A stretch of DNA of 32,000 bases, taken from NCBI GenBank assembly GCA_054661495.1, contig BAAFSQ010000002.1, forward strand, positions 30,001 to 62,000. The letters are read 5' to 3'. Within the stretch, counting starts at the first letter, position 1. Each line of letters begins with the position of its first letter. Source of the stretch: Zygophlyctis sp. KS116. Taxonomy: Eukaryota > Fungi > Chytridiomycota. Below are positions 23,276 to 28,635 of the stretch, in pieces. The position numbers and the translations under genes were made by a program. The notes under the pieces are model-generated. The model worked only from the letters and a program-made list of their open reading frames with translations, made no database searches and was not told where the DNA came from.

Positions 23276-26023
<2,748 letters not shown>

Positions 26024-26060
26024 TTTATTAACGGATCAGGGTTTTTGTAGAGTTGTTGAA

Positions 26061-26201
26061 ATATTCGGACAAAATGTAAAAGTAGGACAGAACATTCAAT
26101 CCTCATTATAGGATGGGACAGCAACAAGTTAAAAGGCGCTGCTGTCACACTTTACTTCTCAGCAGCATTGCTGATTCAACAATGTCGGATGTGACGGCAT
26201 C
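26061..26201 (+). repeat. Block A, copy 1. It includes the GACAGCA...TGCTGTC inverted repeat (26117-26146) and a signal-peptide-coding remnant (26155-26201).
   Basis: Direct repeat of 27092-27230. Confidence 0.85.
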
Positions 26202-26202
26202 A

Positions 26203-26339
26203 ATCGTGGCATATGAGATAAATCCATGAGAAGTTTTCATACTCATGGATTTGGTAATCACATAAAGAAGGGTAACAGAATCAATGATATCATCATAAGA
26301 TATTCCTATAGTCAGATGAGATTACATGCCGCACGGATT
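26203..26339 (+). repeat. Block B, copy 1: palindrome-rich upstream element of secreted-protein gene 1
   Basis: Direct repeat of 27785-27934 with perfectly identical stretches of 66 nt and 35 nt. It has an 11-bp inverted repeat at 26220-26252 and the palindrome ATGATATCAT at 26284-26293. Confidence 0.9.
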
Positions 26340-26382
26340 TTCCACAGCCACTGAACCGACCGACCGCAATCTATTATTAAAA

Positions 26383-26838
26383 ATGATCCTTCCATCAGCA
26401 CTGCTTATGATTCTAACCTCTTATGTAGCGGATGTAACTGCCTCGACAATTCCAACTTATCAAATGATTTTCAGTTATGCACTTGCCAATGGGTCTTTGC
26501 CAGTAAGTTTGAATTATACATTTGGGGGATTTCAATCACAACTTCATCAAATAGATTCTTCTCTAACGAATCATGAGTCTGAGCTCTTGGATTACAACAA
26601 AACGATTGGTTCATCTGCTTCAAAAAGTGTTGTTCCAAACATGGTTAAAGTGAACTTTAAGAGATCATCGGATGAGAAATTTTATTCCCTTGCATCTTTT
26701 AATGCTAGTTGCGACAATGTTGTGCATCAGGAATTTTTAGGAAATGGATCTAATCTGATCTTTGGCTACGCATGCGGAATAACTCATCCGGTTTTCTCAC
26801 GACCATTTCAGCGATTTCCAATCCCAGTCCAACTTTAG
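26383..26838 (+). CDS. Small secreted protein of unknown family, paralog 1 (151 aa; in-frame upstream ATG at 26326), intronless
   Basis: It has a signal-peptide-like MILPSALLMILTSYVADVTA|S and two Cys conserved with paralog 3. Confidence 0.75.
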   Translation: MILPSALLMILTSYVADVTASTIPTYQMIFSYALANGSLPVSLNYTFGGFQSQLHQIDSSLTNHESELLDYNKTIGSSASKSVVPNMVKVNFKRSSDEKFYSLASFNASCDNVVHQEFLGNGSNLIFGYACGITHPVFSRPFQRFPIPVQL

Positions 26839-27091
26839 GCTTTAAGGGCGCAATAGTAACAACTAACAGGGAAACTTTTGACTGTTGGCAAGTTCAAGAT
26901 TAATAAAAATTAATCTTGTGAAATGTTTTAGAGCTTTTTTGAATCCATGTTGAAAATCTTAATCCACATCCACTATAAATTGAAAAATCCATACCAGAGA
27001 ATACAATCAACCAGATCATCATACAATATTTGAGGATTTCTAGTAGGAAACTGACATGATCGGACAATAACCTGGACTAATCAGTTAAAAT

Positions 27092-27230
27092 ATATTCGGA
27101 CAAAATATAAAATGGGAGAGGATGGACAGCAACAAGTTAAAATGCGCTGCTGTCACACTTTCCTTCTTAAAAAAAAGGATGATCTTCTCAGAAGCATTGC
27201 TAGTTCAACTGTTCCGGATGTGACGACATC
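27092..27230 (+). repeat. Block A, copy 2
   Basis: Direct repeat of 26061-26201. Confidence 0.85.
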
Positions 27231-27667
27231 TCCAACACCACAGATTCGACAAATATTGGATCTCAGCATTGCCAAGTCTACTAAGCCTTCCCCAATTACA
27301 GATTTTGGGACTTCAGCTCTAGCGATCATCAATTATATGCGAAATCTTCCATATGCAATGATCATCTTGCAGTTTTAGACTACAACAAAATTATTGCTAA
27401 GAGCTTATATAATGGATCAGTCCAACTCCATGGAAAAGAAAGAAATCACGAAACTGTAATTCTCATAATTTTACTGCTATTTGCGAAAATTCATTGAAGA
27501 AGGAACTTATCACTCCCCGGGGTGGTTCTGTGCAGATTTGGTATATATGCGATCGGTTCATGGAACTGCCTAAAAATCCTCAACTACTGCGAACTTCTGG
27601 GCTAATTACTATTCCTGGACCAATACCAATGTTTCCCCAAAAAGAAGCTGCTGTTGACGTCTTTTGA
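27179..27667 (+). pseudogene. Frameshifted paralog 2 of the secreted-protein family
   Basis: Pieces in different frames (MIFSEALL / DVTTS..Q / NYRFWDFSSSDHQL...VLDYNKII / FTAICEN...WYICD) align with paralog 1 (MILPSALL / DVTAS / NYTFGGFQSQLHQI...LLDYNKTI / FNASCDN...GYACG). At least 3 frameshifts are needed. Confidence 0.8.
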
Positions 27668-27784
27668 TAATGAAGATGAGGACATTGTGGATTTTTAGCC
27701 GAGAATATTAATAATGATTAATATTGATAAACTATTTTGGGCTGTTTTGAATCCAAGAGTTGTGAGTAGAGCGATTTGAAATTG

Positions 27785-27934
27785 ATCGTGGCGAATGAGA
27801 TAAATCCATGATTAGCTTTTCATACTCATGGATTTGGTAATCACATAAAGATTAGTATTATCTAGGGGAACAGAATCAATGATATCATCATAAGATATTC
27901 CTATAGTCAGATGAGATTACATGCCGCACGGATT
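27785..27934 (+). repeat. Block B, copy 2: upstream element of secreted-protein gene 3
   Basis: Direct repeat of 26203-26339. The inverted repeat at 27802-27835 is retained, with changes confined to the loop and innermost pair. Confidence 0.9.
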
Positions 27935-27965
27935 GCCGCAACAGATTTTAAGGAAATTAAACCAA

Positions 27966-28442
27966 ATGATCCTCCCATCAACATTGCTAATGATTCTAAG
28001 CTCATGTATATCGTATGTGACTGCCTCCGATAAAGTAGCTTATCAATTAGTCGAGAGTAAATTCGAATCTACTGTGCAAGTGCCTATCAATATCAACTAT
28101 AAATTTGGAGAATTCATTTCTAAAAACCATGAACTAGGAGCCCCTACACAAAATGGGAATCCTTTTGTTTTAGATAAAAATGTAGGAATTGGTTATGATT
28201 CAGCAAACGACTCATCTACCACTGTCGGTGATAAAACCTGGGCAAAAGTGCACTTTAAGAGACAAAATGAAACTACATGGTATCCCTACAGAATATTTTA
28301 TGCGGATTGCGACAAACAACCACACTCTGTCACTCTTGTTAATTATAAAGAGACGATTGTAAAGTTTTTATACACTTGTGGACCGAATTCGGACAAAAGC
28401 CCTTCGCAGCCGGCCAATCCTCCAGCCCATGTGGATACTTGA
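27966..28442 (+). CDS. Small secreted protein of unknown family, paralog 3 (158 aa; in-frame upstream ATG at 27921), intronless
   Basis: It has the signal peptide MILPSTLLMILSSCISYVTA|S and shares YQ, P-x3-NY-x-FG-x-F-x-S-x2-H, LD-x-N-x2-IG, KV-x-FKR, F-x-A-x-CD and F-x-Y-x-CG with paralog 1. Confidence 0.75.
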   Translation: MILPSTLLMILSSCISYVTASDKVAYQLVESKFESTVQVPININYKFGEFISKNHELGAPTQNGNPFVLDKNVGIGYDSANDSSTTVGDKTWAKVHFKRQNETTWYPYRIFYADCDKQPHSVTLVNYKETIVKFLYTCGPNSDKSPSQPANPPAHVDT

Positions 28443-28635
28443 TCCTTGAAAATGCATATCAGAGAAAGATTCACATATCTGGACTTTTTAAGATTAAAAA
28501 AGATTGATCTTGACGAATTTTATAGACTCAAAGAGTTCCCAAGTTTTTGTAGTAGGCTTACAACCGACGATCCATGTCCTTGTATTTTGTTAGATCAAGG
28601 CCTATGTTTAACTGGATCCTGTTAGGAAAGTGAGA

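Follow-up and report, generated by a model that had tools for sequence, protein, structure and literature searches.

We examined an array of small genes in a 32,000-nucleotide (nt) stretch of contig BAAFSQ010000002.1 of the chytrid Zygophlyctis sp. KS116 (assembly GCA_054661495.1, positions 30,001 to 62,000 of the forward strand), which we refer to as the window. The array carries two intact genes for predicted secreted proteins (genes 1 and 3), a decayed relative (pseudogene 2) between them, and two kinds of repeated flanking block, each present twice (A and A', B and B'). A preliminary description of this DNA gave the order as block A, block B, gene 1, hairpin, block A', pseudogene 2, hairpin, block B', gene 3, and hairpin, and both this order and its coordinates proved correct (Table 1). 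The same description placed the array among housekeeping genes, and its neighbors, which encode a BAR-PH-ArfGAP protein, a B9 protein, and a Na/H exchanger, are indeed of this kind. However, the array is not isolated, because a fourth paralog (gene 4) is located 4.4 kb downstream and additional members are present on two other contigs, C294 and C54. Together, these genes form a small lineage-specific protein family, newly described here, that evolves in a known way.

Table 1. Positions of the genes, blocks, and hairpins of the array within the window.
Feature	Position	Strand	Description
Block A (A0)	26061..26201	+	What is left of a deleted gene-2-type copy: its promoter and the degraded coding end for the signal peptide; joined without a gap to block B
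Block B	26203..26339	+	Noncoding 5' region of gene 1, probable promoter
Gene 1	26383..26838	+	Intact open reading frame (ORF); predicted secreted-type protein of 151 amino acids
3' hairpin 1	26895..26918	+	10-base-pair (bp) stem; ~57 nt past the gene 1 stop codon; z -3.06
Weak B-core-like motif upstream of A'	26999..27030	+	Matches the B core at 75-78% of positions across 32 nt; chance possible
Block A'	27092..27230	+	Promoter of pseudogene 2 together with its degraded signal-peptide start
Pseudogene 2	27179..27667	+	Decayed gene-2-type paralog
3' hairpin 2	27704..27725	+	9-bp stem
Block B'	27785..27934	+	Noncoding 5' region of gene 3, probable promoter
Gene 3	27966..28442	+	Intact ORF; predicted secreted-type paralog of 158 amino acids
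3' hairpin 3	28488..28513	+	10-bp stem including one G-U pair; z -2.11

Blocks B and B' share two stretches that we confirmed to be exact repeats, one of 66 nt (26274-26339, equal to 27869-27934) and one of 35 nt (26234-26268, equal to 27817-27851). When the columns of the alignment between units 1 and 3, which is 57% identical overall, were permuted 20,000 times, a run of 66 identical positions never arose, and the longest permuted run was 29. Only 5 of 137 sites differ between the two B blocks, giving a Kimura two-parameter (K2P) distance of 0.037. The proteins encoded downstream are 38% identical over their full length (BLASTP, E 1e-23). Their mature parts are 31% identical, consistent with the one-third estimated earlier by eye, and the signal peptides are similar, as had also been described, with 71% identity over the 21-residue leader.

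The silent sites of genes 1 and 3 indicate how old this divergence is. Between the mature parts, synonymous divergence (dS) is ~1.2 and nonsynonymous divergence (dN) is ~0.8, with a third-position identity of 0.43. The same codon is used at 24 of the 40 identical mature residues (0.60), where 18.4 (0.46) would be expected by chance; for gene 1 and its ortholog in the related contig L014, the corresponding count is 88 of 101 identical residues. The silent sites of the mature domains are thus saturated, and the coding divergence is therefore old and does not result from recent protein-level selection. The earlier statement that the noncoding flanks are more conserved than the proteins also stands for the 5' flanks when neutral sites are the yardstick, given a distance of 0.037 for B and B' compared to a mature-domain dS of ~1.2.

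These data bear on the possibility that the unit of block B plus gene was duplicated recently and that extremely fast diversifying selection then acted on the mature domain only. Between close strains, gene 1 has accumulated 10 amino-acid replacements versus ~3 synonymous differences, for a dN/dS of ~1.0 in comparison with contig L013, and gene 4 differs from its counterpart in the 99%-identical environmental strain L017 by 4 substitutions, of which 4 are replacements and 0 are silent. The signal peptide meanwhile stays similar, as such a history would predict. However, protein-level selection cannot remove silent-site identity, and the synonymous sites of the mature domains are saturated by both measures given above. 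We consider this sequence of events very unlikely.

Strong diversifying selection, as proposed, is not established by these ratios. Although dN/dS for gene 1 is ~1 between close strains, it is ~0.45 in the deeper comparison with L014, and pseudogenes are frequent in the family. This pattern, together with three decayed copies, fits relaxed constraint as well as positive selection.

Orthologs from related strains provide the rate at which block B changes between species. Gene 1 has orthologs P0001 (99%), P0002 (92%), and P0003 (82%), while no ortholog of gene 3 was found in the public data searched. Block B is separated by a K2P distance of 0.062 from its ortholog in L013, which derives from a close strain. 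Contigs L014 and L015 represent a more distant relative with ~75% DNA identity, and the B block of L014 differs from that of the window at 30 of 134 sites (K2P 0.266), with 21 gap columns. This interspecies value matches the dS of the gene 1 orthologs from the same comparison (0.22-0.29). Differences between paralogous blocks (B and B') and between orthologous blocks (B and L014) are unequal by Fisher's test (p = 2.8e-6). In addition, B' and the L014 block share a 12-nt segment that has been lost from B. Because block B drifts in a nearly neutral manner between species, and because the two copies split before their genes became saturated, the identity of B and B' within the genome does not arise from constraint.

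We infer that the near-identity of B and B' reflects a recent, short tract of non-allelic (ectopic) gene conversion, perhaps ~100-150 nt in length. The tract would be confined to the promoter, stopping short of the start codon by ~45 nt in gene 1 and ~30 nt in gene 3. Its edge is sharp at 26339/27934, and the 31-43 nt that follow cannot be aligned between the copies. The leader is outside the tract, and genes 1 and 3 use the same codon at 7 of their 13 identical leader residues. Thus, the idea that constant regulatory and leader arms are homogenised by recombination holds for the B arms but not for the leader.

An explanation without recombination is that purifying selection alone holds B and B' equal, as might be expected for a dense regulatory element. 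All four B copies, that of the 75%-identity relative among them, agree completely over a core of ~20-25 nt, and the window lineage has almost no derived changes in B while L013 has 7-8. However, the block as a whole diverges between species like synonymous sites, with the 21 gap columns noted above, the 12-nt indel indicates that it tolerates change, and the hairpin of block B is broken in both L013 and L014. We therefore regard selection alone as an unlikely cause of the near-identity. The same hairpin also bears on whether block B is conserved as an RNA gene with a structure of its own or as a structured 5' leader. The hairpin is a perfect 11-bp stem, and the folding z-score of gene 1's copy is -2.4. 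However, the scores for B' (-1.2), L013 (-1.1), and L014 (+0.1) do not repeat this value, the mismatches in the hairpin arms of L013 and L014 are not compensated, and block B has no Rfam match at E values up to 1. A structural RNA is, in our judgment, quite improbable.

Block A has a different character. Sequences alignable to it are A', the 5' end of an intact gene 2 in L015 together with its promoter, and the upstream region of gene 4. These alignments show that block A is not an independent element but derives from a gene-2-type paralog, of which it comprises the promoter and the first part of the sequence coding for the signal peptide. The first A copy has neither a start codon nor a gene body and is joined straight to block B. 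The same A-B junction is present in L013, an independent metagenome contig from the close strain, which lacks A' (a 176-nt gap over 27088-27263). Pseudogene 2 matches genes 1 and 4 of the family in two reading frames, and its DNA is 83% identical to the intact gene 2 of L015, from which it is separated by several frameshifting indels. Pseudogene 2 is a real, decayed family member.

The copies of block A also differ from those of block B in their distances. A and A' are separated by a K2P distance of 0.13, and A, A', and the L015 copy are almost equidistant from one another (0.130-0.142), with the values between species (0.137-0.142) reaching about half of the neutral value. Diverged A-type promoters are found 5' of gene 4, of the C294 member, and of the distant metagenomic members P0006 and P0007, and the mature domains encoded behind them are only ~30% identical to those of other members. 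The likeness of A-type promoters is conservation by selection, wherein purifying selection keeps both the promoter and the signal peptide alike. On the minus strand, the ArfGAP gene starts only 38 nt from block A (window 26023-26061). The leftover A may overlap the promoter of this neighbor, and such an overlap could account for its persistence once the gene it had served was lost.

The more distant relative provides a view of the complete unit. L014 and L015 (Logan, SRR29344320 and SRR29344331) are 1,658-nt contigs from different samples whose ends overlap by 30 nt, and both prove to be rotations of a single cycle of 1,628 nt. This cycle holds exactly one two-gene unit in which both genes, including gene 2, are intact. 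This suggests that in the related organism near-identical units are repeated in tandem in many copies, or perhaps occur in a circular form. Judging from the sequence comparisons, the ancestral structure at the Zygophlyctis locus was most likely a unit with a B-type gene followed by an A-type gene, which was duplicated in tandem and has since lost its first A-type gene. In each unit, a gene of the gene-1/3 type with a B-type promoter would have come first and a gene of the gene-2 type with an A-type promoter second, each with its own 3' hairpin. Subsequent birth-and-death evolution would have deleted one gene-2-type copy down to block A, frameshifted pseudogene 2, and left gene 4 interrupted in the assembly.

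Searches of the genome with single proteins recover only the local copies and gene 4, which begins 830 nt past the end of the window (L004:1501-2146, equal to G000:C2:62830-63475). Relative to L017, in which the gene is uninterrupted, gene 4 as assembled differs by 1 nt in length at L004:1865 and contains an in-frame TGA at L004:2003-2005. Gene 4 is represented in our comparisons by the intact L017 ortholog, and the interrupted pieces were not joined. A search with a profile built from eight members adds, on C294, a 176-amino-acid member and a fragment at the contig edge (97% DNA identity between the two) and, on C54, a 253-amino-acid protein (g6) that has the family leader and roughly the first 40 mature residues in common. 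The C294 sequences (L074, positions 1-181 and 2518-2698) are two P0007-type copies whose 3' ends are 97% identical and which flank ~2 kb of DNA. This interval carries a minus-strand gene, to which a PI3Ka domain is assigned in the matching metagenome contig L019.

By this profile search, the whole family comprises ~8 loci in the genome, each with its own promoter and leader. A scan of the genome for the DNA pattern of the leader yielded family genes and two other sites, and the latter were rejected as further users of the leader because they are unrelated. The family is almost missing outside the lineage, where only 4 relatives were found by word search and only 5 clusters by a full profile search of 1.84 billion protein representatives. 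Pfam scans of genes 1 and 3, P0003-P0007, g5b, and g6 gave no match at E values up to 1-5, and no PDB chain matches in sequence. The view that these genes form an undescribed orphan family is therefore sustained, given its restriction to the lineage.

The distribution of the blocks is relevant to the proposal of a cassette-like system, in which constant promoter and leader arms serve as an expression site for variable mature-domain cassettes that are exchanged in a programmed manner, as in antigenic variation. Conserved arms do surround divergent bodies at this locus, and decayed copies (pseudogene 2 and the remnant A) are located beside intact genes. However, the genome contains only two recognisable copies of block B, namely B and B', and recognisable copies of A occur at this locus only. 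Exact matches to the B core in the genome are likewise confined to B and B', with near-matches that look like chance, and a 20-mer scan of metagenomes for extra B copies returned 14 loci that each match only the 20-23-mer. Every A or B copy is tied to its own complete or decayed gene, each of the ~8 family loci has a promoter and leader to itself, and we found no promoterless cassettes or pool of mature domains, nor any element shared at the leader/mature junction. Moreover, the spacer that follows block B cannot be aligned between the copies. Programmed exchange of cassettes is, on this evidence, extremely unlikely.

Given these findings, we conclude that the locus is probably best explained by a duplicated two-gene unit of a lineage-specific exported family undergoing birth and death, wherein gene conversion has overwritten the promoter between B and B' and purifying selection has maintained the A-type promoters. 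Several points weigh against this explanation. The invariant core indicates that part of block B is constrained. When changes in B are polarised by B' and L014, 7-8 derived changes fall in L013 (L013:173-306) and 0-1 in the window lineage (26203-26339), and selection in the window lineage could contribute to this asymmetry. The asymmetry could also stem from B and B' having corrected each other repeatedly in the window lineage, from decay of the copy in L013, or from noise in the assembly. The counts of 5 and 8 differences (p = 0.41) do not order the conversion and the divergence of the L013 strain in time, and the B'-gene 3 segment is known from one assembly only. The tree of mature domains does not resolve the order of duplications. 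Finally, secretion is predicted from a leader read by eye, and the VIA-align Z values of 7-8 that bear on the fold described below are usual for models without a true match.

We also considered a mosaic history, in which the body of gene 1 is nearer to gene 4 while its flank is shared with gene 3. The identities of 46% versus 31% suggest such a history, but we do not claim it, since an approximately unbiased (AU) test does not reject a clade of genes 1 and 3 (p 0.15) and the tree is unresolved.

All members begin with a homologous leader of 21 residues, which consists of M-I-L/F, a hydrophobic run, and then V-T-A-S. In gene 1, this predicted signal peptide (residues 1-21) is followed by a beta-sandwich core and a Pro-rich tail. 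The core of the family comprises ~110 residues with two conserved Cys and is predicted to form an eight-stranded beta sandwich, and a Pro-rich tail is likewise a feature of the family as a whole. AlphaFold2 modeling from six sequences gave a mean predicted local distance difference test (pLDDT) score of 72, with 80-89 in the core, and produced eight strands and a disordered Pro-rich tail, with the leader modeled as a low-confidence helix. Foldseek returned nothing below E 1e-3, and its best matches were C2 domains (E 4e-3, template-modeling score ~0.42). C2 domains also occupy almost every top row from VIA-align, a search independent of Foldseek, with Z from 8.4 to 6 and root-mean-square deviations (rmsd) of 3.4-3.9 A over ~100-106 residues; the best of these has Z 8.4 and an rmsd of 3.9 A over 103 residues.

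In its predicted topology and size, the core weakly resembles C2 domains such as those of perforin and Munc13. In contrast to these domains, the chytrid proteins have no match to the Pfam C2 profile (PF00168) in the scans listed above. An alignment of eight sequences has two invariant Cys and a single invariant Asp, within a C-D-N motif, and the calcium-binding Asp cluster of C2 domains is not present in this alignment. Some members carry small modules with four Cys, which are located at the C-terminus of gene 4 past a Thr-rich linker, right after the leader in P0006, and twice in the C54 protein. These modules resemble the fungal carbohydrate-binding module CBM_1 only in their Cys spacing and in their attachment through Thr-rich linkers at either end of the protein, and the CBM1 profile (PF00734) does not match the modules of gene 4, P0006, or g6 at E values up to 5. 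A lead from the ESM Atlas consisted only of weak look-alikes of aspartyl proteases (0.87) and was dropped. We infer that the proteins are probably extracellular and that they may bind a cell wall or a host surface.

A 3' hairpin is present after every unit, and that of gene 1 is conserved in L013, L014, and L015. Hairpin 2 differs from hairpin 1 by one compensatory change, from G-C to U-A. An AATAAA hexamer extends across the loop and part of the 5' arm. The hairpin is most simply viewed as a 3'-end signal region.

A second symmetrical feature occurs in the A-type promoters, where a perfect inverted repeat of 7-10 bp brackets a TATA-like box, with the 3' arm of the repeat stopping 25-29 nt short of the ATG. 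The repeat recurs in distant members. Repeats of this kind are located at 27126-27155 of the window (A'), L004:1449-1473 (gene 4), L070:1439-1473 (g6), L015 ~908-943, and L018 ~331-364. Among 51 other upstream regions of the genome, a repeat of at least 7 bp occurs at the same place twice, and one of at least 8 bp never. The arms of the A-type repeat and those of the C54 gene differ at 3 of 8 positions, and all of these differences are mirrored and complementary, as expected for compensatory changes. Block B starts and ends with arms of the C54 type, which are ~115 nt apart. A genome-wide regulon based on the A palindrome or the B core was considered and rejected: the exact pattern of the palindrome was found at gene 4 only, and the B core is limited to B and B' as described above. 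An ATG upstream in block B was considered as the true start codon and rejected: an in-frame stop follows it in L013, it is out of frame in the C54 gene, and it forms the 3' arm of an inverted repeat. Genes of the A type also have in-frame stops just upstream.

We speculate that the family might carry a self-contained expression cassette, composed of a promoter in which the inverted repeat brackets the TATA-like box and a 3' hairpin that includes AATAAA, with block B as a derived version of this promoter. Although we hold this idea to be doubtful, it would mean that a family-specific hairpin or palindrome switch co-regulates beta-sandwich proteins that bind the host or the wall, perhaps during a single stage in the life cycle of an algal parasite.

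Freshwater chytrid parasites are ecologically important, and their molecules are almost uncharacterised. The family described here adds a lineage-restricted set of predicted secreted-type proteins to the candidate host-interaction genes of these organisms. The locus also offers a clean, small example of a conversion tract that would be restricted to a promoter, which could be recognised because the neutral rate was calibrated with orthologs from two related environmental strains. However, the mechanism is already familiar from other parasites, and the general lesson is accordingly modest.

Conserved arms around divergent bodies are also found in the MSG genes of Pneumocystis, a fungal surface-protein family. 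MSG genes use one expression site, the UCS, together with many leaderless donors and a conserved junction element, and recombination joins the constant promoter and leader to variable bodies. In contrast, the chytrid copies each have their own promoter and leader, block B exists in two copies, and there is no junction element.

Conotoxins combine a conserved signal/prepro region with a hypervariable mature peptide. Amphibian skin peptides are built in the same way (PMC3731216). The chytrid family is similar in that 9-16 of the 21 leader residues are kept between old paralogs whose mature parts are ~30% identical. However, its mature part is a predicted folded domain of ~110 residues instead of a short peptide, conservation extends into the promoter, and the silent sites of the leader are not specially kept between genes 1 and 3 (the same 7 of 13 codons noted above).

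A close parallel is with the RXLR (Avh) effector genes of Phytophthora ramorum, whose clustered paralogs have common 5' flanks and differing C-terminal parts, with breakpoints near the start codon (PMC3820680). The chytrid family has no sequence relationship to these genes, its alignment contains no RXLR or LFLAK-type host-entry motif, and its tract covers the promoter only. Nevertheless, both systems involve small secreted proteins (predicted, in the case of the chytrid), local clusters, repeated duplication and loss, and discordance between the 5' flank and the gene body. Promoter overwriting is an ordinary mode of evolution for gene clusters of this type.

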